DNA of 64,000 nucleotides, from assembly GCA_047495785.1 (NCBI GenBank), contig JBLDXI010000002.1:1178001-1242000 (forward strand), written 5' to 3'. Origin of the DNA: Lepidodermella squamata (Eukaryota > Animalia > Gastrotricha). This document shows, in pieces, positions 13,594-58,661 of this stretch. The notes beneath the pieces are model-generated. The model was given only the letters and a program-made list of their open reading frames with translations. It had not been told where the DNA came from and made no database searches. Both the position numbers and the translations under genes were made by a program. The first letter of the stretch is position 1. The number at the start of each line of letters is the position of its first letter.

Positions 13594-14954
13594 ATGTCTG
13601 CTGCGGCTAAAGTTGCCTTCGTGACAGGTATCAACGGCCAGGATGGCTCGTATCTAGCCGAATTATTGCTCAGCAAGGGCTATATTGTTCATGGGACCTT
13701 ACGCCGTGCGAGTTACTTCAACACAGCCCGAATTTCTCACCTTGCTCAAAACCCGCACGCTCATACCGGTTCGCAGCTGCATCTGCACTATGCTGATTTG
13801 ACGGACAGCGTTTCACTGATTCGTTTGATTTGCGATATCAAGCCCGATGAGGTCTACAATTTAGCCGCGCAGAGCCATGTTAAAGTTTCGTTCGAAGTCC
13901 CGGAGTATACGGTTGATACAGACGCTGTAGGCACCCTGCGAATGCTCGAAGCTATTCGAATTGCCGGTATTGAGAAAAAATGCCGCTTCTACCAGGCGTC
14001 AACCAGCGAGCTGTACGGTTTGGTTCAGGAGAAACCGCAAAGGGAGACTACCCCGTTCTACCCGCGATCACCCTACGGATGCGCGAAGCTGTACGGCTTC
14101 TGGATTACAAAGCACTATCGAGAGGCTTACAATATGTTTGCTGTTAATGGAATTTTATTCAATCACGAATCGCCTAGACGTGGCGAAAATTTCGTTACGA
14201 GGAAAGTCACCCGATCAGTCGCAAAGATCGCTTTAGGACTTCAGGTGAGAATTTCTTTTAAATTATGTTGGTGAATATTTTAATTTTTTCAAATTTTAAT
14301 TTTGAAACTTTTGAATGACATTTTTTGATTAAATGTTTGAACAAAATATTTTATAAAATTTTTCAATTTTCCAATTTTTTGAAACCTCGCAAAATTATTG
14401 AAAATTCAAGTTTTATTCCTAATTTTTTAAATTTCAATTTTTTAATTAATTGATTTTTAATTTGATTTAATTTTAATTTTTTCAAATTTTTCATGTCTCA
14501 TTTTTCACTTGTTTAATTTTTTCAATTTTTTTTTCAGGATTCTCTGGAACTTGGAAATCTCGACGCTATGCGCGACTGGGGTCATGCCCGCGATTACGTC
14601 GAGGCAATGTGGGCCATGTTGAACAAAACCGACGACCCGGAGGATTTTGTCATCGCAACGGGCGAAACTCATTCTGTGCGCGAATTCACCAGCGCGGCTT
14701 TCGCGCGAGTCGGCATTACAATCGAATGGCGCGGCTCGGGCGTGAACGAAATCGGCGTTGACGCTAAAACAGGCGTGACGCGCGTCAGAGTGAGCCCACG
14801 CTTCTTCCGCCCAGCCGAGGTCGACTTCCTGCTCGGCGATGCGACCAAGGCGAAAAATATCTTAGGATGGACGCCGAAAATTACCTTCAAAGCGCTTGTG
14901 GAGGACATGATCGATGCTGATGTTGCGCTTATGAAATCGAACCCGGATGCGTGA
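13594..14954 (+). CDS. GMDS: GDP-mannose 4,6-dehydratase, exons 13594-14244 and 14538-14954
   Basis: Motifs [76 protein letters not shown] and [12 protein letters not shown]; one phase-0 GT-AG intron. Confidence 0.97.
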
Positions 14955-36595: not shown

Positions 36596-38017
36596 ATGTC
36601 AAATGCAGCTTTAACAGATTCGCTGGAGTCTGAATATGACTTCATTCAACTGCAAGATTTTGCGACATTTGAGCAGGACGAAGGTGACGTGGAGCAGTGG
36701 GAAATATTGACGACGGAACTAATTCGCCACGAACTAGTCAGCCTTGACCAGTTCGCAGCTAGACTCGACGAGTTCATCAATGCGAACCTTGAAATCGCGC
36801 GAAATCTACAGCAACTTCTCGACGACTTCAACGCTGCAACCAGTCAGTTCAGTTTGGTCCGAGCTGGAGCGAATGCGTTGAGCTTATCGAGCTCGGCTTG
36901 CCTCTCAGCGGGAGTCGCCACCCCAGCCATTGGACCAGCGTTAATGCTGACAAGTGCTTGTGCTAGTTTCGGGAGCGCTGCCGCTTTACTGGCCAGCGAT
37001 CTCCTAGAGGCTCAGAGATGTCGGGCGAAAATCAAAGCGCTAAGCTCCGCCACAGATCTCTTCAAGAGCTTCCATGAACAGACGGAATGTCTGATGCTTC
37101 TTGACATGAAGACAGTACCTAAAGACGACCCGCAGCTCGTGGCAATCATCCGAATGCTGAGCCGGGATTTCCTTATCTCAAGTCCAGTTGTTCGGCAGCT
37201 GCTTCTTGGCAAAACAGGCAGTGCTTTGTACGCTGAGATGCATCAGGATCTTCTGGCCTATCGAACCGGACTTGTTGGCCAGGTCTGCATGGGGTTTGGT
37301 GTCGTGCCCCGTCTCGACAATGCCTGGAGCGTTGCCATGAAAGCAACCAGCCTGCCGTGGTCACCGATCAGCATTTTCGCCCCTCTTGAGCTGTTTGCCT
37401 TTCTCAGCAGTGTTGGTGATTTCAGGCGGAAGAGGTGCGAATGCACGGTGGCGATCGAGCTATCACATCTGGTGATAAGTCTTCAACAAAGGGCTGATAT
37501 GATGAATTTGATTCGCCGGAAGCTCTCGCTTGTTCAGATTGACGACGAAGTACACTACTTATTCACCTGCATCAATGACGCTCTACTTTTGCCAAGTGAG
37601 GATGGCAAATCAGACCATGTTCATTATCAACTCTTGGTCTATACGAATCAGTTGGATCTGGAGCAAAATTTGACTGGGTCATGGTATCGGTATGAGGACT
37701 TCGCAAATCTCGCCCACTTGCTTAATCAAGAGAAGTCACAACAGCTACTGCGATCATTGCCTTCGTTTCCAGGCTTCACGAAACAACAAGCTGATAAGTT
37801 ACTGCAGGCTCATTTCGAGAGATTCCGCCAAGTTGTGCGACACCGCCTTGAAGGCTGGCTGTCAGCACTCCTGGCTATCCCAGAAGTCCTGCATATAGAT
37901 TACGTCGCTAAATTTCTTCAGCAACCAAATGATTTCCGCCACCATGTTGGCGAGCATCCTTGTCCTGCAACATCTGCAATCCGAAGTTCTGCTGAGCAAT
38001 TTTTCGGGCAGTACTAA
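36596..38017 (+). CDS. Apolipoprotein L-like protein fused to a C-terminal PX (phox homology) domain, 473 aa, single exon
   Basis: ApoL-like amphipathic helix followed by a small-residue hydrophobic hairpin (LQQLLDDF..AGANALSLSSSACLSAGVATPAIGPALMLTSACASFGSAAALLASDLLE) and an ApoL-like C-terminal helix (FAPLELFAFLSS..AIELSHL). PX hallmarks: VHYQLLV, RYEDFANLAHLL, LPSFPG, RHRLEGWLSALL, VAKFL. Domain calls were made by eye. Confidence 0.7.
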   Translation: MSNAALTDSLESEYDFIQLQDFATFEQDEGDVEQWEILTTELIRHELVSLDQFAARLDEFINANLEIARNLQQLLDDFNAATSQFSLVRAGANALSLSSSACLSAGVATPAIGPALMLTSACASFGSAAALLASDLLEAQRCRAKIKALSSATDLFKSFHEQTECLMLLDMKTVPKDDPQLVAIIRMLSRDFLISSPVVRQLLLGKTGSALYAEMHQDLLAYRTGLVGQVCMGFGVVPRLDNAWSVAMKATSLPWSPISIFAPLELFAFLSSVGDFRRKRCECTVAIELSHLVISLQQRADMMNLIRRKLSLVQIDDEVHYLFTCINDALLLPSEDGKSDHVHYQLLVYTNQLDLEQNLTGSWYRYEDFANLAHLLNQEKSQQLLRSLPSFPGFTKQQADKLLQAHFERFRQVVRHRLEGWLSALLAIPEVLHIDYVAKFLQQPNDFRHHVGEHPCPATSAIRSSAEQFFGQY

Positions 38018-39208: not shown

Positions 39209-42200
39209 TTACAGAATTGCACCGGCTACCAGTAGAATGTCTAAGGTTTTCTGTTTGTCTTCATCCGATACATCGTCATCGCAATTCTGGGCTACAAAAA
39301 GGGCTGTCCAGCCAGTTGACGGCACTCTGTAATTGACATCGACCCCGAGCTCGCGCGTGAGCAAGTCAACAACAGCTTGGCGACCTTTAAAGGATGCAAC
39401 CATAAGAACAGAGCACCATTTCTCAGATGGAGGATCAAACAACTTCCCCAGTTTGATAGCAATTTGAGATTCGAAGCACAAGGACTTGACGTCTGCTAGG
39501 AAAGAAATGAGAAGTCTCACAATATCGGCGTGGCCCATGTAAGCTGTGACGTGTAGAGGCGTAATACCATGTTCATCTTCAATATTAACGTCGCACTTAA
39601 ACTCCCCTGCAAGCAATTTAACGACGTCCGCGTGTCCATTCCGAGCAGCAAAGTGCAACGGTGTCAAGCCATTCTTCCCGGAGGCATTAACGTCGCAGTT
39701 GAACTCCCCTGCAAGCATTTTGACGACGTCCGCGTGTCCATTATCAGCAGCAATGTGCAACGGAGTCCAGCCATCCTCCGCGGAAGCATTAACGTCGCAG
39801 TTGAACTCCCCTGCAAGCAATTTAACGACGTCCGCGTGTCCATTATCAGCAGCAATGTGCAACGGAGTCCAGCCATTCTTCCCGGAGGCATTAACGTCGC
39901 AGTTGAACTCCCCTGCAAGCAATTTAACGACGCCCGCGTGTCCATTCTGAGCAGCAAAGTGCAACGGTGTCAAGCCATTCTTCCCGGAGGCATTAACGTC
40001 GCAGTTGAACTCCCCTGCAAGCATTTCGATGACGTCCGCGTGTCCATTCTCAGCAGCAATGTGCAACGGAGTCCAGCCATCCTCCGCGGAAGCATTAACG
40101 TCGCAGTTGAACTCCCCTGCAAGCAATTTAACGACGCCCGCGTGTCCATTCGGAGCAGCAAGGTGCAACGGTGTCAAGCCATTCTTCCCGGAGGCATTAA
40201 CGTCGCAGTTGAACTCCCCTGCAAGCAATTTAACGACGCCCGCGTGTCCATTCTGAGCAGCAAAGTGCAACGGTGTCAAGCCATTCTTCCCGGAGGCATT
40301 AACGTCGCAGTTGAACTCCCCTGCAAGCATTTCGATGACGTCCGCGTGTCCATTCTCAGCAGCAATGTGCAACGGAGTCCAGCCATCCTCCGCGGAAGCA
40401 TTAACGTCGCAGTTGAACTCCCCTGCAAGCAATTTAACGACGCCCGCGTGTCCATTCGGAGCAGCAAGGTGCAACGGTGTCAAGCCATTCTTCCCGGAGG
40501 CATTAACGTCGCAGTTGAACTCCCCTGCAAGCAATTTAACGACGCCCGCGTGTCCATTCTGAGCAGCAAAGTGCAACGGTGTCAAGCCATTCTTCCCGGA
40601 GGCATTAACGTCGCAGTTGAACTCCCCTGCAAGCATTTCGATGACGTCCGCGTGTCCATTCTCAGCAGCAATGTTCAACGCTGTCCAGCCATCCTCGTCG
40701 CAGGCATTAACGTCGCAGTTGAACTCCCCTGCAAGCAATTTAACAACGTCCGCGTGTCCATTCTGAGCAGCAAAGTGCAACGGTGTCAAGCCATTCTTCC
40801 CGGAGGCATTAACGTCGCAGTTGAACCCCCCTGCAAGCAATTTAACGACGTCCGCGTGTCCATTTTGAGCAGCAATGTGCAACGCTGTCCAGCCATCCTC
40901 GTCGCAGGCATTAACGTCGCAGTTGAACTTCCCTGCAAGCATTTTGATGACGTACGCGTTTCCATTCTGAGCAGCCTTGTGCAACGCTGTCCAGCCATCC
41001 TCGTCGCAGGCATTAACGTCGCAGTTGAACTCCCCTGCAAGCATTTTGACGACGTCCGCCTGTCCATTCTGAGCAGCAAAGTGCAACGGTGTCAAGCCAT
41101 TCTTCCCGGAGGCATTAACGTCGCAGTTGAACTCCCCTGCAAGCATTTCGATGACGTCCGCGTGTCCATTCTCAGCAGCAATGTGCAACGCTGTCCAGCC
41201 ATCCTCGTCGCAGGCATTAACGTCGCAGTTGAACTCCCCTGCGAGCAATTTAACAACGCCCGCGTGTCCATTTTGAGCAGCAATGTGCAATGGTGTCCAG
41301 CCTTTCTTCCCGGAGGCATTAACGTCGCAGTTGAACTCCCCTGCAAGCATGATGACGACACCTTTGTGTCCATTAAAGGCAGCCAGGTGCAACGCTGTCC
41401 AGCCATCCTCGTCGCAGGCTTTAACGTCGCAGTTGAACTTCCCTGCAAGCATTTTGATGACGTCCGCGTGTCCATTATCAGCAGCAATGTGCAACGGAGT
41501 CCAGCCATCCTCCGCGGAGGCATTAACGTCGCAGTTGAACTCCCCTGCCAGCAATCTAACGACGTTCGCGTGTCCTTTCAGGGCAGCAAAGTGCAACGGT
41601 GTCCAGCCATTCTTCCCGGAGGCATTAACATCGCAGTTGAACTCCCCTGCAAGCAATTTAACGACGTCCGTGTGTCCATTTTCAGCAGCCTTGTGCAACG
41701 CTGTCCAGGAATTCTTGTTGCAGGCATTAACATCGCAGTTGAACTCCCCTGCAAGCATTTTGACGACGTCCGCGTGTCCATTTTGTGCAGCAATGTGCAA
41801 CGCTGTCCAGCCATCCTCGTCGCCGCCATTATCTTCGCAGTTGAATCCCACCATAAGCATTTTAACAACGTCCGCGTGTCTATCCCGAGCAGCAAAGAGC
41901 AACGGAGTCCTACCTCCCTTTCCGGAGGCATTAACGCTGCAGCTGAACTCCCCTGCTAGCAATCTAACGACGTCCGCGTGTCCATTCTGTGAAGCAATGT
42001 GCAACGGAGTCCAGCCTTCCTTCCCGGAGGCATTAACGTCGCAGTTGAACTCCCCTGCAAGCATTTTGACGACGTCCGCCTGTCCATTCTGAGCAGCAAG
42101 GTGCAACGGTGTCCCGCCATCCTCTTCGGATGCATTAACGTTGCAGTTGAACTCCCCTGCAAGCATTTTGACGACGTCCGCGTGTCCATTCTGAGCAGCC

Positions 42201-45200
42201 TTGTGCAACGCTGTCCAGCCATCCTCGTCGCTGGCATTAACGTCGCAGTTGAACTCCCCTGCAAGCAATTTAACAACGCCCGCGTGTCCATTTTGAGCAG
42301 CAATGTGCAATGGTGTCCAGCCTTTCTTCCCGGAGGCATTAACGTCGCAGTTGAACTCCCCTGCAAGCATGTTGACGACACCTTTGTGTCCATTAAAGGC
42401 AGCCAGGTGCAATGGTGTCCAGCCATTCTTCCCGGAGGCATTAACGTCGCAGTTGAACTTCCCTGCAAGCATGATGACGACGTCCGCGTGTCCATTTTGA
42501 GCAGCAATGTGCAACGGTGTCCTGCCATCCTCTTCGAATGCATTAACGTTGCAGTTGAACTCCCCTGCAAGCATTTTGACGACGTCCGCGTTTCCATTCT
42601 GAGCAGCCTTGTGCAACGCTGTCCAGCCATCCTCGTCGCAGGCATTAACGTCGCAGTTGAACTCCCCTGCAAGCAATTTAACGACGTCCGCGTATCCATT
42701 TTGAGCAGCAATGTGCAATGGTGTCCAGCCTTTCTTCCCGGAGGCATTAACGTCGCAGTTGAACTCCCCTGCAAGCATTTTGATAACGTCCGCGTGTCCA
42801 TTCAGGGCAGCGTTATGCAAGGCGGTTAGTCCCAGCACCATTGTAGTATCCACATTTATGTATTTGTTTGCGAGAAGTTTAACCATTTCGGTCTGTCCCT
42901 CCCCAGCCGCAACATGCAACAGCGTCATCTTGCTTTCATTCTGCTTTTGAACGTCTGCCTTCATTGCACCAGCTAATATTTTAAAAACCTTAGTGTGGCC
43001 GTTCTTAACTGCCGCCCATATAGGGGTCTCATCATTGTTTGTCGCAGTATCTATGCTTTCTTGCGAAACACTTCCGAGGATTTCAACCGTACGCAGATTG
43101 CCGCTATTCGCGGCTATGTAAATGGGTGTTCTCCCCAATAGATCCATTAACAGCGGATTAGCATTGAACCTTGTTACCAATAGTTTTGCAATCTCATCAT
43201 TTCCTTCCTGCGCAGCTAGAAACAATGGTGTCACGCCTTCGCTGTTCTCGCAGTTAACGTTTATTTTCAAAGCAGTGGTCGATAACAGCGATTCGATTTG
43301 CTCGATTTTGTTTAGCCTGATAAGGCGAAAAAGCAACTAGGCAGATAAAATGATAGCAAGCTCATTAATGATCAAGGAAAAATGCGGATTACTTTTTCTC
43401 CTGCACTTAGGTCTGGAATAGCAAGATTTCCAGCGGAAGCTGTTTCCATTAGCTGATGGGCGATTTGATCTTCTGTCAGCGAATTATCCGTTGCGTTAAG
43501 CAAAGCTTGCGGCGGAACGCGCCTCGAGCTGTTTTTTTCACGAATCATAGCCATGATCGCGTTCCGGAAATGAAATGAATAACCGCGCGAATCATCAAAG
43601 TCTCTCGGATGATTGCTGTATATGCATATGTATTTGGGTGAATCAAAGGATGGCTTATTGTTTGAAACTTACAAAAGGATTGCCAAAGTAGAGTCAAACT
43701 TGAAATTATTTCGTATAAAAAACTTTATTTCCATCCAGAGGAATAGCTTACAGGCATGCAGAAATTTGCCAGCTCGAACAAAGTGACACCCAAAGACCAC
43801 CAGTCGCTCGCTTGTGAGTGATCTTTCTTCGCAAAGAGTTCAGGCGCTTTGTAAAGCTGATTGCCACCGTGTCTCAAGTTTTCAACTGGTTGCTTCTTGC
43901 TCCTTTGTGAGCATTGTGACATGGAATATTACATCAAATCCTTGTTCAAAACATCGATCCTACCTTTCGTAAACTTTCGCCAGCCCGAACCCTCCAAGTT
44001 TGACAGTGGTTCTGTTATGGAGAAAAATATTCTTAGGTTCTATTGCGCGATGGAGAATTCCGCTTTCGTGCAGCTTTTCCAGCGCAGAAGCAAGCTGCCG
44101 TGACCATTCCATCAACAGACTTTCGGGAATAGGTCCAGCCGATTTTTTCTTGTAATCATTCAAATTTCCATCCGAACAGTATTCCATTACCAAATGATAA
44201 ATTGCCGCACCTGCAGAGCCATGCTCTTCAAACAATGAAAACAAGAATTATAAAATATAAAGACAAACATGGCTTTTGAGCAATTTTTAGTTGTCTTGAC
44301 TAAGGGGGCAGAAAATGATTTGCAGTGGGATTTCACGCGGAACGGAAAATAGTGACATACTTCACGCACTCAAAGCACAGTAGTACGATAAACAAAAGGT
44401 GCATGCGACTCACCCTCGAATGATCCAAAAACCGAAAGGATGTTAGGGTGCCGCAAATCGGTGAGTTTAAGATTCTATTATGTTAAACATCTTTTTACAT
44501 GCATTTTTGATAATAAAAACGGGGCTTTACCTCGTCTCGGCTTAGTTTGATTATTCTTTCTGCAAAATTAGGATCGCTGTCATAACTACGAGGAATTAGG
44601 CTTAGGTTGAATGCCTTGACAACATAACGGGCCACGTCTTTGTATCCCCTGCATAGCATTGCCGAGCTGAAGGTACCTCTTCCGAGCTCCCTTTCACGCT
44701 TGAACTCGTGGATTGAGGAAAAACTCAATTTCTTTGCTTCCGCTACGGGCGCTTTGGTGTTCACTTGTCTAATGAAATGACTGATGAGTAGAGCACCAGC
44801 ATCAGCTCGCTTTGAAGGGTCTTTAACGAGCATCGACAGAACAAAGCAATGGTACTCATTTGAATAAGGCCGGTCTTTGGCAAATGATTTCGGTTCTTCC
44901 CTGGAAATATAAAGATCAACATATAGTTAGCGACGCCCCAAAACAACCACTTTGATGACTCATTCGATCGCACTTTAGGAGCCTAACGTTATGATGAAAT
45001 ACGTTCTGCTTATAGAGCTTGAGACTAACAGTAGACGTTCCCGACTTTCCTATGCATAATATAACAGCATAATAATAAAGTATGAGCGATACACTTTTCC
45101 TGTGTTCACATAGCCACATCCTTAAAAAATGAACTACATTCTTCGCCCGAATTTTCTGTTATTTTCACCATTACGCGAACTTTCTGACGTCGATATTACG

Positions 45201-47336
45201 GGGCGTATGTTTCCTACAATACAACAGACCTTATTCTTAATTTAATTGAACCATATCGCGGGGTCACATTTTATTCAACATCAAATTTACTTCTTACTTT
45301 ATGTTTACTTTTTCTCAGATTACTTTTTCTATCATCAAACTCTTTTTTCAACAGTAAATTTCGATATGTTAATATTTGCGATACACACTCATTAAAGCCC
45401 TTGATGATGGCCGGGAAAATAACAGAAAATTCGGGCGAAGAATGTAGTTCATTTTTTAAGGATGTGGCTATGTGAACACAGGAAAAGTGTATCGCTCAAT
45501 GGCTAAGCGTACACAATGTGCGTGACACACAGCCAAATTTAACCCTTTCACGGCGGGAAGGACGATTTCGTAATTTCGACTTTGCTAATTCACAGTTCCA
45601 TCAATTTAACGAATTTTCCCATAATAATTGGCAAAATACTACTTTCGGATGTTGCCTACAAGAATCCATCAGTAAAATTTAGTTATCTCTTCCGCTCTTG
45701 GAATACGATCAATTTTAAAATTTCAAACCGATGCACGTTTTCCTTATTTTTTTCAATCGAACTTACTTGATGATATCAGTTAGATTATCGAACTGAAAAA
45801 TAATTTCATTTATATTTATTGAACATGCGGAAATTATTTGCTTACCGGCAAGTAGAAATTAGCCAGTTCGAATAAAGTCACGCCAAGCGACCAGCAGTCG
45901 CTCTCCTTTGAATTCTTGCTACTGAACGTTTCTGGCGCCATGTACAATTTCGTGCCAAAAGCAACTGGCATGCTCGTCGAACTTGGCCGAATTCAAATAA
46001 TTTCTTTTCTCATATGCTTCATGCAATCTAATATGACTCACCCGCCATCAATGTCTGGGGATTTAGCTAAGCCGAAATCGCCAAGTTTCACGATCCTATC
46101 GTCCGAGCACAAAAATATGTTAGCAGGCTTGATGTCCCTATGCATCGCGCCAAGACTGTGAATCTTATTGACAGCGGACACCAACTGGCAAGACCATTCG
46201 TGCAAGAGGCCTTCTGGTATTACCGATTGGGATTCTTTTTTCCGTTTGATGTACTTTTCCAAATCGCCATTTGAACAATGCTCCATCACCAAGTAGTAAA
46301 TTTCATCCTGCAGTGGTAACCAGTGTTCTAGCCCTTCAACCGTTTGCTGCCAATATTCTAGGAAAAATGTATTTAGCACATTGCAAGAGCTTGGGTGTCT
46401 CGCGGATGATACCTCTGAAAGCACCACGGATAGCGACGATGTTATCATGCTTCAAGCTCTCAATTAATTTGTGCTGATGAAACAATAATAGGTAGATGAC
46501 CGAAAATAAGTGAAAAGTGGGGTTTGGCGAAAATTTTGACATTGTGAGATTTTGATGCCGCCTTCAAGATCTCATAACGAGGAGTCGATCGGTATAAAAA
46601 ATAGGTTGATATTCATCAGGGTTGCAGAGAAAATGGGCTTCAAAGTATAGGAATGACAATTTATAATTTCGAAAAATGCGCGTTTTCAAAACCAATATTA
46701 AAAATCCCTCGCACAATAAATTCTGATGTTTTATTTTTTATGCGCTGTCGACATTTCTATGGGTAATCTAAGGTGAGGAATCTCGCTATATGTTCAAAAG
46801 TTTTGTTGGGATCAAGCTAGTGTCTCTAGGACAACTTCAATCAATGACACTTTCCAGTGCATCTCTGGGGTTTCCCGTGTTTTAAGGCGGATGGGAGCAT
46901 GTTAGAGGTCTGACATTTGAATATTCAAAATCCTCAAGAAAAACTGAGTAGAGACATCTAGGAATCCAAGAATCGTCCCTCTTCAAGCCAACACGCGTTT
47001 TGCGATTTGCTGAAAAATACAGAAAATACGCCAAACCCCACTTTTCACTTATTTTCGGTCAGATATAACTATGCAATTAGAAATAATGTGACTTACCTCT
47101 TCGCAGCTCAATTTTATGAGTTTCACTGCGACCCTCGAAACATCGCCATCTTTATTTTGGTAATTCCTCAGAATCGCGTTCAGATTAACAGCCTTGACCA
47201 CGTAGTTGGCTAAATCACCATCATTCCGTCGACATAGCCATGCGCTACCAAAGCTACCTTTCCCTAACATTTCGATCATTTTGAATTCGCACATTGAGTT
47301 GAACGCTGGCGCCATTTCGGGTAAATTCATGTTCAT
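39209..47336 (-). CDS. Tandem kinase-pseudokinase-ankyrin repeat protein (~1994 aa), 12 exons: 47336-47097, 46473-46413, 46357-46042, 45981-45846, 45792-45767, 44900-44531, 44474-44414, 44210-43964, 43902-43752, 43698-43673, 43615-43393, 43336-39209
   Basis: All 11 introns are GT-AG with matching phases; total 5985 nt. Kinase 1 (NEK-like): [32 protein letters not shown]. Kinase 2: [21 protein letters not shown], lacking both the catalytic Asp and the DFG Asp. The last exon encodes ~37-39 ankyrin repeats. Confidence 0.8.
39566..42830 (-). repeat. Coding tandem array of 32 near-identical 102-bp (34-aa) ankyrin units
   Basis: The framework gcattaacgtcgcagttgaactcccctgcaagca recurs every 102 bp. 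Protein unit: G[WL]T[PA][30 protein letters not shown]. Confidence 0.97.
45083..45498. mobile_element. Foldback/MITE with 84-bp perfect inverted repeats in kinase gene intron 5
   Basis: 45083-45166 is the reverse complement of 45415-45498; no clear TSD. Confidence 0.85.
46497..47061. mobile_element. MITE with 33-bp perfect inverted repeats in kinase gene intron 1
   Basis: tgaccgaaaataagtgaaaagtggggtttggcg (46497-46529) is inverted at 47029-47061. The equivalent intron in the pseudogene paralog is ~60 bp. Confidence 0.82.
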
Positions 47337-47538
47337 ATAAATAGTTGTAGCCTGTAGCCTCTAAAAGCAAAAAATGCTATTCAGTCTCAATGTTAAAAGA
47401 TGAAGTGCTCAGGTAGCAATTCTAAGTGGAGAAGTTGCAACCAAATGTGCTGCGCAGTGATTGAATATATTTGATTACCAAATTTGTTATCAACGAAAGA
47501 ATCGGACATATCGTTGGCAGCGCGGCAGAAGGAACCTT

Positions 47539-49746
47539 CCATTCCATCAACAGACTTTCGGGAATAGGTCCAGCAGATTTTTTCTTGTATTTATTCAAAT
47601 TTCAAATTTATTCAAATTTCCAATGTGACGTAGATTATCTACGTCACATGGATTAAGGTGGCAGATAATGGTTTACAGTGTGATTTCACGAGGAACAGAG
47701 TGTATATTAGACATAACTTACGCACTCAAAACACGGTAGTACGATAAACGAAAAGTGCATCCTACTCACCCTCGAATGATCCGAAAACCGAAAGGATGTT
47801 AGGGTGCAATTGGTTCACGAGTTTACGATTCTATATGTTAACATATTTTTTTACATGCATTTCTGATTAAAAAACGGGGCTAACCTCGTCTCGGCTTAGA
47901 TTGATTAATCGTTCTGCAAAATTAGGATCGCTGTCATAACTACGAGGAATTAGGCTTAGGTTGAATGCCTTGACAACATAACGGGCCACGTCTTTGTATC
48001 CCCTGCATAGCATTGTCGAGCTGAAGGTACCTCTTCCGAGCTCCCTTTCACGCTTAAACTCTTGGATTGAGGAAAAAATAAGCTTCTTTGCTTCTGCTAC
48101 GGGCACTTCGGTCATCTTCTCTTGTCTAATGAAATAACTGCCCAGCAGATCAGCAGCAGTAGCTCGTTTAGAAGGGTCTTTAACGAGCATCGAGAGAACA
48201 AAGCAATGGTATTCTTCCGAATAGGATGGCTCTTTTTCGAAGGGTCTTGGTTCACTCCTAAAAAATGATAACGATTGAGCGGTAATCTTTTTATGATATA
48301 AGGGAACCGAAATTTCCGATGCCACACTCCAAACTTACCCTGCGATTTCACCTGCACTATTAAACTGAAACAAGTAAAATTTCTTACGAGAGCGCAATCG
48401 CAGTAGCGCTGACTTACTGGCAAGTAGAAATTCGCTAGTTCGAAGAAAGTAACCCCGAGTGACCACCAGTCGCTAGCCTCTGAATTTGGCTTTTCATGAA
48501 ACGTTTCAGGTGCCCTGTACAAGTTCAAGTGCCAAGTCCAATCATCGAGATACTACTACCTGAACTGCGATATAGAGGTCAAGCTCCTCAGACTCAGATA
48601 TTATTATTGCATGAAAGCTTACTCGCTTGTAGGGGGTCTAGCCAAACCAAAGTCGCCATGTTTGACGGTTCTCTCGTAGTCGCACAAAAATATGTTCTTC
48701 GGCTTCGCTTTCGATATCGCGATGCAGTACGCCGAGGCTGTGAGCCTTTTTGACAGCCGACACCAACTGACAAGCCCAGTTGTGCAAGACACACTCAGGT
48801 ATTATGGCTTGGGCATCTTTTTTCGCTTGATGTAGCCTGACAAATCGCCGTGCGAACAATGCTCCGTAACCATATAATATATTTCATTTCCTTTCTGCCA
48901 ATGGTCGGGCGTTTTAATCGGCTCCTTCAGCAGTTCTGTAATAACAAATTTACTGTAATTTTTCGCAAAAAGAAAGAATACCCTCTACACAGGTTTTGCG
49001 CTTTACGCTATAAGAGAATTTCAGCCAATGACAGAAATGTTTTAAATGGAATTCCGCCATGAACAGCCACCATCGTGGCACCTCGAAACGATTCTGGTCA
49101 CAGATAAGAGACTATCTCATGTCTTAAATCATGACACAGATATAAATCTGTGAAATAGTCTGTGAAGAACTATGATTAGACCCATCCATAGTTGAATTAT
49201 ACCACCATGCCCACTCGTGTATGACATTCACGGCATGGATTGGTAAGCCATGGCGGAATTGACACCAATTAGTCCTTGGAGCATATACCCATGTCCCATG
49301 GGGAAATTCCATTCTAACCTTGCTAAATATGTCATTGGCTGAAATCCCTTTAGGGACTACGAAATATATGGCAAGCTTTTTTAATTGCTGCCATCATTTA
49401 CCTACCTGTAAATGCGCCACGGACAGCGACAATGTTGTCATGCTTCAAGCTCTCAAGTAGTTTGTGCTGATGAAAAATATCAAAATAAGCAAATGCCATC
49501 GAAAAAGCCCAAACTGTTATAAAGCCGTACCTCGTCGCAGTTCAATTTTATGAGTTACATTGCGACAGTCGCATCGCCACTTTCTTGTCCGTAAGTCATC
49601 AGAATCACGTTCAGGTTGACAGCCTTAACCACGTAGTCAGCTAAATCCCCATCTTTCCGCCGACATAGCCATACAAGACCAAAACCTCCTTTTCCCAGTT
49701 GTTGAATTCTTTCAAATTCAGATATAGAGGTAAATTCAGCCGCCAT
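47539..49746 (-). pseudogene. Decayed paralog of the tandem kinase gene (kinase 1 plus truncated kinase 2, no ankyrin exon)
   Basis: Same exon layout and high similarity to the intact copy (e.g. [35 protein letters not shown]). It has an in-frame TAA at 49555-49557, frameshifts around the HRD/DFG exon (48620-48900), and breaks off mid-exon near 47539. Confidence 0.82.
49011..49352. mobile_element. MITE with imperfect ~50-bp TIRs in a pseudogene intron
   Basis: atttcagccaatgaca (49018-49033) is inverted at 49330-49345, with further partial match inward and TA at both ends. Confidence 0.7.
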
Positions 49747-51742: not shown

Positions 51743-52255
51743 TCAAGCTCGCCGCACGAAATGTTCGATGGGCAACTCAATTAACCGTTCAACTCGCTGC
51801 CGTTCCAATTTCCCCAACGGATCGCGAGCTGTCAGCCGTTCCGGCTGTGTTAGCCCACTAGCTGCCGGTAGAATGACCTTCAATCGAACAGCCTCAAGCG
51901 CCGTCGCTTGAGATGCAACCAAGTGATTGATTTCCTGGGTTCGATTCGCCTCATATCGCAATCGAACGACTCGAAGCCGATTTCTAGCCTCGGCGGCTTT
52001 CAGCTCGCCAATGAGGTCCAACTGGCGCTCACGTTCTCGTCGCGTTTCCTCGTCCTCAGCTGATGAAGGCATGTTAGGCTGTGATTCTTCCGCCGCTTGT
52101 TTCGCTTGCATAATTCGCTTCTTCGCATCTCGAGCTGCTTCTAAGGCTTGCTTTGGCGGGTCGGAATATATTTTTTTCCGAAGCAGAAACTGGTTAATTT
52201 CCCCTGGTTGTTTTCTCGAAGTACTTGGTGATGCGTTATCGGATCCGCGACCCAT
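51743..52255 (-). CDS. LKAAEAR1: LKAAEAR motif-containing protein 1
   Basis: Contains IGELKAAEARNRLRVVRLRY..QEINHLVASQATALEAVRL..DPL...ERQRVE. The likely ATG at 52255 lies just after a polypyrimidine-AG. Confidence 0.85.
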   Translation of the reverse strand: MGRGSDNASPSTSRKQPGEINQFLLRKKIYSDPPKQALEAARDAKKRIMQAKQAAEESQPNMPSSAEDEETRRERERQLDLIGELKAAEARNRLRVVRLRYEANRTQEINHLVASQATALEAVRLKVILPAASGLTQPERLTARDPLGKLERQRVERLIELPIEHFVRRA

Positions 52256-52505
52256 TATTAAAAAATTTCTCCCTAATAAAATAAAAACGAAATTTAGATC
52301 AATTAATATTTTAATTTGTTGGCAAATCACAACACAACATGAGCTTTGAGCATAATACTGTCAAAAGATCACAGCCAAAATGATAAAACAACTCAGCAGC
52401 ACTCATTTTTGCTATTTCAACAGCATTAATTTTTTCAATAAAATTTGAGTGTCGATTAAAAAAGTGCTGTGAGCAAAATAAGTGACAAAAGCATATAAAT
52501 ACTAG

Positions 52506-55500
52506 TTATTTTTCGCCATGGCACTTCCAAACGAAAATGCAACAATCATCTCCGCCGGCTGAGAACAAATGACTGTCATCTATTGAAAATTGAACATTAG
52601 TAACATGAGCAGAATGGCCGATGAACGCTTTGCTTCTCGCGCCAGGCGTCGAGCAAGGGAAGGCAGCTAGGCGGACAAAACCGTGGTCATCCCCAGCGGC
52701 AACAACATTGCCATTTTGCGAGACACAACACGAATTAACCTCGGTAGATGCTTGAGCTTGTTCAGCCGCTGTCGCCCAAAATCCAACTGTTTCCTTACCG
52801 GCAACACTTGTCCACGTGTGCCAAGTTTTCATCTCGGCCTCAGCCGTGTTTTTCACTGAATTTCCGTCCGGAATTGAGAAAAACTTGTGCCCGTAATTGC
52901 CATCTGCAACGCGAAGAACCGTTCCATCTTCGGAGAAGTCCATCTTATTAACGCAACCAGTTACCCCCTTGCATGAGCCGATTCGCTTCGGCGATTGCGG
53001 GTCGGTGATGTTGTACAAATCCACGCAGCAATCTTGCCCGCCAACGGCTAGAATCGCGCCATCCGGGCTGAATTTTACGTCATTAATCGGTTTACCGCGA
53101 TCTCGAATTTTATAAGCGACTTTCAGTGGATCATTGAGATTACCCATTGCTACTATCAAAAGTTGGCCATTAGTCAGGCCAACAGCGACAAAGCGACCAT
53201 TCGGCGAGATTGAGCAAGATTGAGCTGGAGCAGGGCATTGTAAACGCCGAGTTTGAGTCTTCTTTGTTATATCCCAAACTCGAAGGGACGCGTCTTGCGA
53301 GGCTGAAACTACGATGTTAGGTTCTTTAGGGTGGACTGATAGACCCCACAACTCGCCACCGCCATGGGCTGTCATCAAAGGTTGGCCCGTTGAAGTTCGC
53401 TCGGTCAACATCCAAATTTCATTTGAGGACAGACCAACAAGGATGGATCCTCGAATTCGGGAGACTGATTTAACGCAAACAGATTTTTCACGATCGGCGC
53501 CGTCAGCAATTGCCGCTAGGGCGTGGGGTTCAATTGAAAATGGCTTGCATCGATTCATATCAGGATCCCAAAGTTTCACAACGGTATTTTCGTTATTAGC
53601 AATCGGCTCTTTCGCCCCTGTTACGATGAAACCATCAACAGGTGTTGTATACATGGCGAAAATCGGGCCGAAATGAGCCTTTGCAATTATTTTAAACAGC
53701 TGGTTTTCACGCCACACGTAAATGTCGCCCATCATTGAACCGGTGTAGGTCAAAACTGGTCCATTTTGCGGCTGTCCAAATGCAAGTGAAAGCATAGTTG
53801 GAATTCGAGTCCGATCTCCTCCTGCAGATGATGGGCGTGCGTCTTTTTGAACTACAACGCCCCGTTTTCCGACAATTTGAGTCCCGGCGACCTGCCAAAA
53901 TCGAAGGTGACGAACTCCGACTGAGACCATTTGAGACTCTGAGTCGGGTTTGAATTGGCATAGGAAAATCCTAGTATCACTGCCTTGACATTTCGCGTGG
54001 ATTGCGGCTTCTTGCCAACGCCAGACCACGATAGTAAACGTTGGATCGTCAACTCCGACCGAAGCTAAAAATCGGCCTGAAGTCGAAAAATCTAACGAGC
54101 AAACACCCTTGCCATGTGGGGTCTTCAAAATCGCCACGGTTTGGGGCCCGTTCGGATTCGCAGCATCCCAAACGTGAATAGTTGGTTCTGTCGAGATTTG
54201 GCCCGTCGCGACTATATGCCACATTTTCGGGTTTTTATTCGTCGCCAAGCTTATGATGTCATCATCGTGCTCTAGATAGAAAGACTGCTTGCCTGTCGAA
54301 AGATCAAGGACGATGCCAGCCCCAGCAGCGTGGTACACAACCTTTTGCTGCCGGTCCCCAGCATCGGTATCAAGCAAGAAAAAAACATTTTGGCGACAAT
54401 CGTAGCCGCGATATCCGAAAATATACTCAAGGGAGAGGTCGAAAATCCGCGAGAAACGACTTTGAGACGACGTTGCTACCAACTTTTGTTGCCTGGGAGT
54501 TCTTGCACTAGTATGAAACTCCTCAGTAATCGTATTCAAATGCTGTTCATGAGGTTTGGCTGCATCAGCAGCAACAGCTCTACGCTTGTTTTCAGCGTAA
54601 ACTTTGGACATATAGTCTAGGTCCTTTTCATATTGGACATCCGAATCGAAGCCTCCGGCGTCATCACTTTCTACATCTGACTCTTCGCTGTCGCCACCAG
54701 AAATTAAGGTTGATCCTCGCCGGAGATCATTCTGACCTCTAAGGGCCCAAATGCAGGCCGAGGTATCAGCACCTCCTACTGATATCAAGAATTTGTCCCC
54801 GACGGTCCACCTAACATTGGTTACGTGGGCTGAATGCGCGCCGTAAGATCGAAACTTCGCGAATTTTCCCCTACAAGGGTAATTGAAGAGCTTAACGAAT
54901 CCGAAATCATCGCCTGTAGCAATCAACTGCCGGTCTGCTGTGACACACGCTGCATTTATGTCAGTAACGTCAGCTCTAGGCGGCCATAATCCCTCGCAAT
55001 TCTGCCCTAAAACCCCTGTTAAGGAGGACCATCCCCTAGCGTCAACATCCGCGTTCTTCAGGGCGATCCGCTTCCCGCTTGGGGCCTCGAAAAATAGCGT
55101 CTCTTTCGCGCCGGAATTGACCATGAGTAATTTACCACTTTCGTCCCAATCAATGTGAGTAATATAACTCGACGCTCCTCGGCAGATGCCGCAGCGTTTT
55201 TGAGATTGAACGTTGTAGATGTCAACAAAATTATCATGTGAAGCTACAGCAACGTACTTATTCAAACCAGGCGCCCATTTAATGTCTGAAATCTCCTCTT
55301 GGCGATGGTGAAGTTCAATCATTGAGTCGAAAGAATTCGCGTCAACAACTGAAACCTTGCCATCGATGTAGCCAACAGCTAACAGAGTTCCATCAGGTGA
55401 GAAAGCAATGCATCTAATAGCTTGTCTCATCTTTTTCGCGCGAACCATTGAACGAGAGGCAATAGACCAAACTCGAATGGTGCGGTCATCGCTAGCGGTT

Positions 55501-58500
55501 GCGAAAATACTCCCGTCGATAGGGTGGCAAGTCAACCCCCAAATTTCCCCTTCGCCGTGGCCTTGTGTAAGAATGACGAAAGTCCCATTCTTATCGAGTT
55601 CGAGAACATCGCCGGTTTTAGTACCAACCAAAATTTTCCCATGTCCTAACATCACTGATCGGACGCTAGGTTTGTCCTCTAAGAGGAAACCTCTTGTGCA
55701 TGATGATGACAGCAAGCCATATGTTCGTAAATTTCGCTCGAAACTGGCGTCCCATAGGCTAACTAAGCCATCTTTGCCGCCAGTTACGAACCCTTTATCC
55801 AACGAATGAATCGCGCTGCAAGGTCCATTGTGAGCTTGAACAACCCGTTCTAATTGATTACCTTTCCAGCAATAAACGTGACCAGATAGAGATCCGCTGA
55901 AGCAAATTTCAGCTGAATGCCCGTAAGCGACGCATATCATCGTGTCTAAACGAGCTACGGTGCCGAACGTTGCTCGATTTGAAGTAAAACCTCCACCAGC
56001 TTGTTTCCAAAACCGAATCAGCTTGTCACCGACTGTTACCAGCCGATCAGGGTCGAATGGATTAAATTTAACGGCGAAGATGTCAGCCTTATGAACTCGC
56101 GTACTTGCCAATTTTTCACCCTTTTTCCAGTCCCAGACTATGAGGGTTCTATCATCGTCCATGCCAATAGTTGCCAGTTTTCGGCCGCCATCCGATGGCC
56201 CGGAGAAATCAGCCGCGCAAATGCCTCGCGAATGATCTCCGCCGAGTATAGCCAGCGCGGTGTTTCCCGGCTGCTGCGCATCCCAAACATGGCAAGTCGG
56301 TTTCCGCCCGATTTGACCGGTCGCGACGATGTCTTTGACGGGATGAACAGCTAGGCACAGAATGTCGTCAGTGTGACCCTTGTAGAATCGCTGCGATAGC
56401 GTCTCGCGATTCATAACTACACCCAGAGCGGCAACAAAGTAGACAGCTTCCCCGGATTGGGTGTAGGCGACATTTTGACGGCAATCGTAGCCCCGGTAGC
56501 CGAAAGAGTGATAAAGTACCAAGCCTTGAGTCGGTAGTTCTTGCCGCTTGTCTCCCGGAGCTAAGTCTGATTTGATTGCTCGTTTGAGCCCCGAACCTAG
56601 ATCGGCTTTTCGGTCAAGTCTGGCTGCTCCAGCAGCAACTACACGTTGTTGCCGTTCAGTTTCTGAGTCTACTTCACGATCAGACCTCTCCGAGTCGGTA
56701 TAATCCGTCATCGAATCCATATAAGCGTTATCTTCCTCCGCCGAAATTACACGCTCGTGAGCCATATCATCCATGCTGGCTGATGCTGCGACGGCTGACC
56801 CTACTCGGGACGATATCAAAGACTCAGTTCCAGCCGGAATGAAGCGCCACTGAAGAATGCCCCGATCAGCACCCCCAGTAGATAAAACATATTTACCATC
56901 TGATGAGAACTTAATATTCGTAACGTGGGAAGAATGGCCGACGTAGCGACGATACTTGGTTCCCTTTCTTGGGCAAGGGAAATTGAACAACTTCACCAAG
57001 CCACTGTCATCCCCAGTGGCGATCGCATTGTTAATGAAGCTTGCATCAGCTGCATTTATATCTGTAATTGAGGATTGCGAATATTTTTCCCAGATTCCTG
57101 CACATTCCGGGCCGAGGATGCAGGTCCAAGATGCCCATCGCACTGTCGCCAGTTCTTCAGCTCGAGGCGTTATCAACTGCCCGTTTCGAGCGTCGTGAAA
57201 TAACCTCTCGCCTGCGCCTGAGTTCAGTTGAATAAACAACGAATCGGAAGACCAGTCTAAATGAGTTATATAGCTCGAAGCACCCTTGCATGTAACGACC
57301 TTTCGATAGCCATTTGCGACGGAGTAAATGTCAACAAAATTGTCATGAGAACCAACAGCGAGTAAAGCATCATTTGGGCTATATTTCATGTCGCTTATCA
57401 CTTCTTTGCGATCATGAATGTTGAAGAGTTCTTTCAAATTTTCTTTCGTCGAGAAAACAAGGAAGGCTCCGTTAATCAAGCCAACTGCAAGATGAGTATT
57501 GTCTCCATTTAAAGCACAGCTACGTCCGCCCGCAGGCAAGCTCACGCGAGCAACGATACGATGTTCATCATAGTCCCATAATCTCAGGGTGCAATCGTCA
57601 CTAGCGGTAGCGAAGACGCTTTTGCTCTTGCTGATACATAATCCCCAAAGTTCTCCGTCACTGTGGCCAACAGCAAAACTCCGAATTTTTGGGCCGCTGG
57701 AAGCACCTGAGTTGAACGTGGCCTCAAACAGTTCCCCGCCTTCGGTTCCAATCATGACTGCTCCCCCGTTGACTGCCATTGTAGCTACACACATGCCTTT
57801 GTATCCACCAGGGGCTTGAGTAGTAAGGTTGATCCTCCCCAGGCTGTCGAACTGAAGATCCCACACAGCAATGCAACCATCTTTACCACCAGTCACGATA
57901 CCACCAAAATCAGTGATCGCAACGGCTCGCGCGCCTCCTGGGTGCGCTTGCTTGATTACACCAACTATTTGCAGGTTATTCCAGATACAAATGTCACCAC
58001 TTTGTGTGGCGGAGAACAACCGGCCATCCTTCGAATAACACATGCTAAAAACTGTTTGGACCTCAGCAGATCTACCAAAAATGCCGCCCTTGCCGACCAA
58101 AGTATTTCCGGTAACATTCCAAAACTTGATATTACGAACACCTCCTGTGGCGCAAGCGGTTGGATCCGTTAAATGGCACCGCAAATCGAAAACATCGTTA
58201 GAGTGAGCAATGGCTGATGCCACCTGTTTTCCTTTAGACCATTGCCAAGCGATAATTGATGCTTTGCCAAGCAAGCCGACAGACATTAGGCGCTCTCCGT
58301 CACAACTGAAATCGAGCGAAGCAATGCCGATTGTTAACCCTTCTTTCAGAATCGACAGGGTAGTCATGTTTACTGAATTCCATACGCATATATAAGGCGC
58401 TTTTCCGATTTGACCACTAGCCACAATCTCACGTTTCGGATGAATAGCTAAACTCGTGATGTCATCATTATGGCCCAGAAAAAAGCGTTGTTTGTTGCTT

Positions 58501-58661
58501 TTAGTGTCTTCAACAATGCAAGTACCAGCGACAAAGTACACCAACTCTCCAAGTGAATTGTATAACAGATTTTTATTAGATTTAGTGCCGGCATATCCGT
58601 AAACGTGCCACAACTCCAACTTGGATTTTGGAGCGTTGCGGTCCAAGGTTGGCTCTGGCAT
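52506..58661 (-). CDS. EML6: Echinoderm microtubule-associated protein-like 5/6 (three TAPE/HELP-WD40 modules), 2051 aa, single exon
   Basis: Three HELP-like motifs (HVYGYAG; HSFGYRGYDCRQN; YIFGYRGYDCRQN). Each module ends with ATGDD.G.VKLF.FPC...GHS.HVTN..F and WD40 repeats. EML5 versus EML6 is not resolvable. Confidence 0.93.
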   Translation of the reverse strand: MPEPTLDRNAPKSKLELWHVYGYAGTKSNKNLLYNSLGELVYFVAGTCIVEDTKSNKQRFFLGHNDDITSLAIHPKREIVASGQIGKAPYICVWNSVNMTTLSILKEGLTIGIASLDFSCDGERLMSVGLLGKASIIAWQWSKGKQVASAIAHSNDVFDLRCHLTDPTACATGGVRNIKFWNVTGNTLVGKGGIFGRSAEVQTVFSMCYSKDGRLFSATQSGDICIWNNLQIVGVIKQAHPGGARAVAITDFGGIVTGGKDGCIAVWDLQFDSLGRINLTTQAPGGYKGMCVATMAVNGGAVMIGTEGGELFEATFNSGASSGPKIRSFAVGHSDGELWGLCISKSKSVFATASDDCTLRLWDYDEHRIVARVSLPAGGRSCALNGDNTHLAVGLINGAFLVFSTKENLKELFNIHDRKEVISDMKYSPNDALLAVGSHDNFVDIYSVANGYRKVVTCKGASSYITHLDWSSDSLFIQLNSGAGERLFHDARNGQLITPRAEELATVRWASWTCILGPECAGIWEKYSQSSITDINAADASFINNAIATGDDSGLVKLFNFPCPRKGTKYRRYVGHSSHVTNIKFSSDGKYVLSTGGADRGILQWRFIPAGTESLISSRVGSAVAASASMDDMAHERVISAEEDNAYMDSMTDYTDSERSDREVDSETERQQRVVAAGAARLDRKADLGSGLKRAIKSDLAPGDKRQELPTQGLVLYHSFGYRGYDCRQNVAYTQSGEAVYFVAALGVVMNRETLSQRFYKGHTDDILCLAVHPVKDIVATGQIGRKPTCHVWDAQQPGNTALAILGGDHSRGICAADFSGPSDGGRKLATIGMDDDRTLIVWDWKKGEKLASTRVHKADIFAVKFNPFDPDRLVTVGDKLIRFWKQAGGGFTSNRATFGTVARLDTMICVAYGHSAEICFSGSLSGHVYCWKGNQLERVVQAHNGPCSAIHSLDKGFVTGGKDGLVSLWDASFERNLRTYGLLSSSCTRGFLLEDKPSVRSVMLGHGKILVGTKTGDVLELDKNGTFVILTQGHGEGEIWGLTCHPIDGSIFATASDDRTIRVWSIASRSMVRAKKMRQAIRCIAFSPDGTLLAVGYIDGKVSVVDANSFDSMIELHHRQEEISDIKWAPGLNKYVAVASHDNFVDIYNVQSQKRCGICRGASSYITHIDWDESGKLLMVNSGAKETLFFEAPSGKRIALKNADVDARGWSSLTGVLGQNCEGLWPPRADVTDINAACVTADRQLIATGDDFGFVKLFNYPCRGKFAKFRSYGAHSAHVTNVRWTVGDKFLISVGGADTSACIWALRGQNDLRRGSTLISGGDSEESDVESDDAGGFDSDVQYEKDLDYMSKVYAENKRRAVAADAAKPHEQHLNTITEEFHTSARTPRQQKLVATSSQSRFSRIFDLSLEYIFGYRGYDCRQNVFFLLDTDAGDRQQKVVYHAAGAGIVLDLSTGKQSFYLEHDDDIISLATNKNPKMWHIVATGQISTEPTIHVWDAANPNGPQTVAILKTPHGKGVCSLDFSTSGRFLASVGVDDPTFTIVVWRWQEAAIHAKCQGSDTRIFLCQFKPDSESQMVSVGVRHLRFWQVAGTQIVGKRGVVVQKDARPSSAGGDRTRIPTMLSLAFGQPQNGPVLTYTGSMMGDIYVWRENQLFKIIAKAHFGPIFAMYTTPVDGFIVTGAKEPIANNENTVVKLWDPDMNRCKPFSIEPHALAAIADGADREKSVCVKSVSRIRGSILVGLSSNEIWMLTERTSTGQPLMTAHGGGELWGLSVHPKEPNIVVSASQDASLRVWDITKKTQTRRLQCPAPAQSCSISPNGRFVAVGLTNGQLLIVAMGNLNDPLKVAYKIRDRGKPINDVKFSPDGAILAVGGQDCCVDLYNITDPQSPKRIGSCKGVTGCVNKMDFSEDGTVLRVADGNYGHKFFSIPDGNSVKNTAEAEMKTWHTWTSVAGKETVGFWATAAEQAQASTEVNSCCVSQNGNVVAAGDDHGFVRLAAFPCSTPGARSKAFIGHSAHVTNVQFSIDDSHLFSAGGDDCCIFVWKCHGEK

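Follow-up and report, generated by a model that had tools for sequence, protein, structure and literature searches.

Kinase-ankyrin fusions, kinase-pseudokinase tandems and an expansion of Nek-ankyrin proteins in Giardia are each already known. Of the 198 Giardia Neks, 133 (67%) consist of a kinase domain followed by 1–26 ankyrin repeats, 71% of the Neks are predicted to be catalytically dead, the family turns over between strains, and removal of a repeat altered the localisation of a Nek-ankyrin protein; the authors saw this association in no other species (Manning et al. 2011, PMC3218828). Here, we analysed a window of 64,000 nt (the whole stretch of DNA under study, positions 1,178,001 to 1,242,000 of contig JBLDXI010000002.1, assembly GCA_047495785.1) from the gastrotrich Lepidodermella squamata, the minus strand of which holds, at 47336–39209, a gene predicted to encode a NEK-like kinase (kinase 1), a pseudokinase (kinase 2) and a long ankyrin array. 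The best-supported reading would make it a young gene of a NEK-like kinase-pseudokinase-ankyrin family that is lineage-specific and changes as copies are duplicated, copies decay and repeats are shuffled. Judged by sequence and layout, its closest described parallels would be the Giardia Nek-ankyrin proteins and, after these, oomycete proteins with multiple kinase domains and ankyrin repeats.

The Giardia Nek-ankyrin/Protein 21.1 system resembles the gene described here in its N-terminal NEK-type kinase followed by a variable ankyrin array and, as a large lineage-specific family, in its many dead members, duplication and loss. However, the Giardia proteins have a single kinase domain and a median of 8 repeats of the TALM type, whereas the present gene has two tandem kinase folds and ~39 repeats of the TPLH and TALH types, with no TALM, and we see nothing that points to shared ancestry beyond the NEK group. 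This closest described parallel (PMC3218828) had been missed in the comparison set of an earlier note on this DNA. The oomycete parallel is given by predicted proteins of Achlya hypogyna (OQR86166.1, OQR87402.1), each of which joins 3–4 Pkinase domains to many ankyrin repeats and which rank, as whole proteins, with the best matches to the kinase 1 core. Yet their ankyrin blocks precede and interleave with the kinases, the identity is only ~30%, and they are uncurated gene models that possibly represent merged tandem genes.

Plant tandem kinases (Rpg1, WTK1/Yr15, Sr62, WTK4) descend from RLK/Pelle kinases and act with NLRs. They are cytosolic and likewise place a kinase and a pseudokinase in a single chain, to which a binding domain is sometimes added, but have neither a NEK-type kinase nor a long ankyrin array. 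The analogy with these proteins, drawn by the earlier note, thus holds for the layout and fails for the descent, since the kinases here are NEK-like and no RLK/Pelle chain occurs among the 60 best matches of kinase 1 to solved structures. Ankyrin repeats also accompany a kinase or pseudokinase fold in RIPK4, ANKK1, ILK, TNNI3K, DAPK1 and RNase L, the last of which uses its ankyrin and pseudokinase parts jointly to sense a ligand. These proteins have one kinase fold and 4–11 repeats and fall in the TKL or CAMK groups, and none of them is found among the 60 best solved matches of kinase 1; RNase L has the reversed domain order and a KEN nuclease. With its two folds and ~39 repeats, the gene does not belong with RIPK4 and ANKK1, which are defined by a RIP-type TKL kinase and ~10 ankyrin repeats. 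JAK and GCN2, too, hold a dead and a live kinase fold in one chain, the dead one being regulatory in those proteins, but there the pseudokinase precedes the kinase, no ankyrin array is present and the genes are conserved and single-copy. In the literature, we found no account of a NEK-derived kinase-pseudokinase-ankyrin family in animals, in keeping with the earlier note, which had not recognised the architecture as a described animal family.

Gene model and kinase domains

The gene model was obtained by reading the three minus-strand frames base by base and joining exons at GT-AG sites with matching phase. It comprises 11 exons and 10 GT-AG introns, all of agreeing phase, and yields a spliced frame of 6060 nt that starts with the ATG at 47336 and encodes 2019 amino acids (aa) with zero internal stops. 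The surrounding window is eukaryotic DNA with short introns (~55–60 nt) and several long genes that are intron-free. Eleven in-phase GT-AG introns and a protein of ~1994 aa had been proposed before; the GT-AG borders and phase match stand, while intron number and protein length are revised to those given above. The sequence TTTTTTGCTTTTAG, found 24 nt 5' of the start ATG (47337–47380, minus strand), resembles a strong acceptor and could be the acceptor of an intron in the 5' untranslated region or a trans-splice acceptor.

Kinase 1 (aa ~17–320) is encoded by exons 1 to 6. Exon 1 (47097–47336), which ends in a GTAAGT donor, holds the ATG, the glycine loop GKGSFG (aa 25), the VVK lysine and a family-specific insert between β3 and αC; exon 2 (46413–46473; 61 nt, phase 0 to 1) provides αC and β4; exon 3 (46042–46357) contains the core, with HRD (aa 173) at 46142–46134 and DFG (aa 194) at 46079–46071; and exon 4 (45846–45981) contributes the activation segment, APE and DCWSLG. 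Exon 5 (45110–45183; 74 nt) is the weakest part of the model, and the frame depends on it. Exon 6 (44531–44900) carries the end of kinase 1 (KDPSKR), a short linker and the start of kinase 2 (GRGTFS, VVK) in one open frame, so that in the gene model both kinase folds lie in one polypeptide. Kinase 2 (aa ~338–625) continues through exon 7 (44414–44474; 61 nt, with the length and phases of exon 2), exon 8 (43964–44225), which encodes the core with HRA (aa 478) at 44052–44044 and GFG (aa 498) at 43992–43984 of the predicted pseudokinase, and exon 9 (43752–43902) with APE and DWWSLG, to exon 10 (43393–43653), which encodes the end of the C-lobe and a linker and closes with the donor GTAATC. Exon 11 (39209–43336), entered through the acceptor TTATCTGCCTAG, encodes 1375 aa with ~39 ankyrin units and ends in the stop codon at 39211–39209. 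At the joint between exons 10 and 11, a phase-0 donor is followed after 56 nt by a good acceptor, and the ankyrin frame is open exactly up to this acceptor; the junction 43393/43336, predicted earlier, was reproduced exactly by our independent splice model. Altogether, the exon structure and motifs argue that the kinase and ankyrin anatomy is real and that the fusion of the two parts is likely, and the locus is probably a real protein-coding gene.

Pfam detects Pkinase on the exon-sized minus-strand open reading frames (ORFs). With this match and the glycine loop, VVK, HRD, DFG and APE all present, as noted earlier, kinase 1 has the sequence of an intact eukaryotic protein kinase domain. In kinase 2, the earlier observation of HRA for HRD and GFG for DFG was borne out: the catalytic Asp (HRA), the catalytic-loop Lys (Glu instead, in HRAIEPKN) and the metal-binding Asp (GFG) are all missing, and the domain fits the sequence definition of a pseudokinase (loss of at least one of the β3 Lys, the HRD Asp and the DFG Asp). 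The NEK-like placement of kinase 1 rests on pairwise matches to named and solved kinases. Among solved structures (PDB), its core matches NEK7 best (E 2.4e-15), followed by NEK1 and NEK2, with PKR and GCN2 coming after NEK7 within one to two orders of magnitude in E, and the 60 best matches contain no RIPK, IRAK, Pelle, RLK, ILK or DAPK chain; a PDB search with exon 1 alone returned nothing at 1e-4. Its named domain-level matches are Nek1, Nek2 and NIMA-related kinases at 31–53% identity. Orthology to a conserved NEK subfamily (NEK1–11) was not found, as no match exceeds 53% identity over the core and the insert does not occur in Nek2. For kinase 2, the closest solved structures are GCN2, TYK2/JAK2 and NEK1. 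No death, TIR, CARD or NACHT domain was detected in the protein, and it is predicted to be cytosolic because it has no hydrophobic segment.

The two kinase domains are each other's best match (41.6% identity over 310 aa), compared with 27–36% to outside kinases aligned over the whole domain. They have in common a ~16-aa insert between β3 and αC, which canonical Nek2 does not have, and their intron positions and phases coincide: the donors follow ...CEE and ...RDE, the second exon of both cassettes (exons 2 and 7) measures 61 nt, and the following phases run from 1 to 2 and from 2 to 0. The mutual best match, the insert and the intron positions thus show that the pair arose when a multi-exon NEK-like cassette was duplicated internally. 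A partial genomic homologue from another sample (P0037/L004; Logan, SRR21279729, positions 602–1171) is kinase 1-like, with 40% identity over 195 aa, and also has the β3–αC insert; its exons 1–3 are fused, and a GT donor lies exactly at the position of intron 3. The insert and this donor site together show that a wider subfamily exists, with a member in at least one other organism.

The ankyrin array and the upstream copy

On the 1375-aa ORF that forms exon 11 (39209–43336, minus strand), Pfam marks 33 Ank/Ank_2 stretches (E=0). We count ~39 units, close to the ~38 of the earlier note, whose long array is therefore upheld: 4 degenerate units are followed by 33 regular ones of exactly 34 aa without insertions or deletions (aa 813–1934) and 2 further degenerate ones. 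Tandem Repeats Finder resolves the homogeneous core of the array (39584–42811, minus strand) into 31.6 copies with a period of 102 nt, which match at 85% and lack indels. Units 24–26 equal units 27–29 in a perfect 306-nt tandem duplication, which is either the product of very recent unequal crossing-over or an assembly effect. Of the repeat-type motifs, TPLH occurs 22 times, TALH 9 times and TALM not at all. The amino-acid variability peaks at unit positions 10, 7, 34, 32, 18, 2 and 31, which, by our mapping onto designed ankyrin repeat proteins (DARPins), include 5 of the 6 positions randomised there. The ratio of nonsynonymous to synonymous substitution rates (dN/dS) among the units is 1.23 at the variable surface sites versus 0.44 elsewhere, a contrast that is suggestive only, since the sites were picked after the variability had been seen. 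From the repeat pattern, unequal crossing-over appears to be remodelling the array. A search for homologues with the N-terminal 140 aa of the ankyrin exon returned generic ankyrin proteins only, none of them with a kinase. A 796-aa ORF lies antisense to the array at 39569–41959 (plus strand); the Pfam Ank match is on the minus strand, and the antisense frame is a by-product of the lack of stops in the repeat.

Directly 5' of the gene, at 47539–49746 on the minus strand, lies a decayed partial duplicate that comprises a kinase 1' and the start of a kinase 2' and has no ankyrin part. It keeps the ATG, but exon 1' contains a nonsense codon, the core a 1-nt deletion and a 7-nt insertion, one GT donor is lost, and the copy is truncated in exon 8'. 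Similarity to the main gene varies along the copy in a mosaic: the kinase 1 core is 69% identical, the region from exon 6 to intron 7 is 87% identical, and a segment of 65 nt in exon 8 reaches 95%; a stretch of 573 nt that includes intron 6 (47651–48223) is 86.7% identical. The lesions mark the upstream copy as a pseudogene that a genomic duplication left behind, and the locus evolves by birth and death.

Neither 1.84 billion representative sequences nor an index of 5.8 billion proteins contained a close homologue (best match at most 53% identity), a look-up of exon 6 in the ESM Atlas gave nothing beyond weak leads, and a scan of JGI metagenomes with exon 6 found no relative. One candidate with 53% identity over the core (P0106) was rejected as a relative, being a stand-alone kinase in a compact, unrelated eukaryote. 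The multi-kinase proteins that top an exhaustive search with the kinase 1 core were likewise rejected as a family; their rank is due in part to the summing of scores over domains, and most come from protists.

Readings of the locus

On balance, we lean towards a gene that codes for protein or was put out of action only very recently, its product being a cytosolic NEK-like kinase-pseudokinase-ankyrin protein whose array would bind partners and whose pseudokinase would regulate. In such a protein, the solenoid of ~39 repeats would be the partner-binding or localising part, with variation falling mostly on the usual binding face, the pseudokinase may regulate kinase 1 or dimerise with it, and the output would come from kinase 1, so that the whole could serve as a cytosolic scaffold kinase with partners bound through the array. 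An immune or non-self role is possible, with nothing that indicates it directly.

Several observations weigh against an active gene of this kind, some of them around exon 5, the weakness of which the earlier note had missed. Its acceptor (CGTCAG) and donor (GTGAAC) are both poor, a better-looking acceptor just 5' of it runs into a TAA, and omitting the exon shifts the frame, which makes it indispensable in the model. The earlier description of the gene as intact is hence not confirmed. Neither the upstream copy nor the equivalent place in kinase 2 has an intron that matches intron 5, which falls within a bin with a depth of ~5000 in X1, the sole run found, as expected of high-copy sequence. 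On both grounds, this intron probably represents a repeat that landed in an earlier exon, and the insertion may have broken the gene. Furthermore, a perfect 84-nt inverted repeat (45083–45166 and 45415–45498, spacer 248 nt), which stems either from an inverted duplication of very recent date or from an error of the assembly, reaches into exon 5; one arm spans the 3' end of this exon together with the donor, and a perfect hairpin of this length in the pre-mRNA would bury that donor. The contigs of run X1 cross the introns unchanged, i.e., they show DNA-like coverage, and the run thus says nothing on splicing. No polyadenylation signal was found within 500 nt of the stop, and no ankyrin unit was detected across the junction of exons 10 and 11, which leaves the kinase and ankyrin exons tied by phase and position only. 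The contrast in dN/dS adds to this list through its choice of sites.

Much of this is what would be seen if the gene had died recently, with the repeat insertion in an old exon 5/6 and the inverted duplication having broken kinase 1 and the ankyrin exon still open because it is young. The adjoining copy is already a pseudogene, and intron 5, the weak exon 5 sites, the stop after the better acceptor and the inverted repeat all fit. Against it, a GT-AG path that preserves the frame does exist, neither the 4.1 kb of ankyrin coding sequence nor any other of the remaining exons contains a stop or a frameshift, and the framework codons have the low dN/dS given above; we regard a recent death as a doubtful, minority possibility. 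The missing unit across the last junction would also suit a pair of genes, in which a tandem-kinase gene is followed by a separate ankyrin gene with its start codon inside the long exon. This we consider very improbable, as the ankyrin frame extends exactly to a good acceptor placed 56 nt past a phase-0 donor, both parts lie on the same strand, neither a stop nor a terminator-like gap separates them, and the first Met of exon 11 comes ~63 codons in.

Other readings concern function. The protein could be a cytoskeletal, ciliary or cell-cycle scaffold kinase in which the array places the kinase on a structure, the expansion then being a structural specialisation and not a matter of recognition. 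The NEK type of the kinase argues for this, as does the fact that the same has been proposed for the Giardia Nek-ankyrin proteins, where deleting a repeat shifts localisation (PMC3218828). However, there is no orthology to any conserved NEK, and the homogeneity of the repeats and the perfect duplication indicate very recent remodelling, which would be unusual in a structural protein; we hold such a role to be conceivable though doubtful. The earlier proposal of a diversifying intracellular immune or allorecognition receptor, in which unequal crossing-over would supply array variants and a ligand would free kinase 1 from the pseudokinase to emit a defence or rejection signal, draws on an array that is homogenised yet variable on its surface and perfectly duplicated in recent time, on the birth and death at the locus, and on the lineage-specific nature of the gene. 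The layout recalls the repeat domains of fungal NLRs and the plant tandem kinases. Nonetheless, the kinases are NEK-like and not IRAK/Pelle- or RIPK-like, no death, TIR, CARD or NACHT domain accompanies them, the dN/dS above 1 is post hoc, and any young repeat family shows the same features. A receptor of this kind thus seems to us unlikely, and it is quite unlikely that the gene belongs to an animal family of variable cytosolic receptors in which a NEK-derived kinase-pseudokinase module and a reshuffled ankyrin binding face would serve to sense non-self or pathogens.

If the family behind the favoured reading, that of a lineage-specific kinase-pseudokinase-ankyrin family, is expressed and large, it would make up a sizeable and unstudied portion of the animal's kinome. 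Under the same condition, it would offer a natural experiment in the diversification of repeat arrays and a candidate non-canonical recognition system. Were the receptor reading true, it would represent a third independent invention of a tandem kinase with a variable binding domain, beside the plant tandem kinase proteins and the repeat-bearing fungal NLRs. If unexpressed or broken, the gene would simply add a further young, decaying copy to a family rich in repeats.

Repeats and neighbouring genes

Introns 1 and 4 are likewise enlarged by high-copy elements. Most of intron 1 is filled by an element resembling a miniature inverted-repeat transposable element (46497–47061), with 42-nt terminal inverted repeats that are 90% complementary; its depth in X1 is in the thousands, which marks it as a high-copy family. 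Similar high-copy stretches occur at 44873–45069 and 45464–45660.

Further 5' of the gene, an intron-free EML6-like gene (2051 aa) adjoins a gene with an LKAAEAR domain (51743–58661, minus strand). The EML6 neighbour reaches at most 48% identity to mollusc and nemertean proteins, and similar proteins occur in protists too. The EML6-LKAAEAR pair is also adjacent in an ENA metagenome scaffold from a relative (L002:1–3035), in which no kinase or ankyrin gene follows the pair. Between window and relative, amino-acid identity is 89% for GMD, 70% for EML6 and 66% for LKAAEAR; between the two conserved blocks, the two genomes have unrelated DNA. The absence from this scaffold, the lack of a close homologue and the decayed duplicate alongside bear out the earlier view that the gene is lineage-specific rather than a conserved housekeeping orthologue. 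GMD (13594–14954) has one intron here and none in the relative, where the scaffold that bears it also holds Cys-loop receptor genes. On the other side of the gene, an intron-free ORF of 473 aa with a C-terminal PX domain (Pfam E 2.3e-5) lies at 36596–38017 on the plus strand, convergent with the gene's 3' end.

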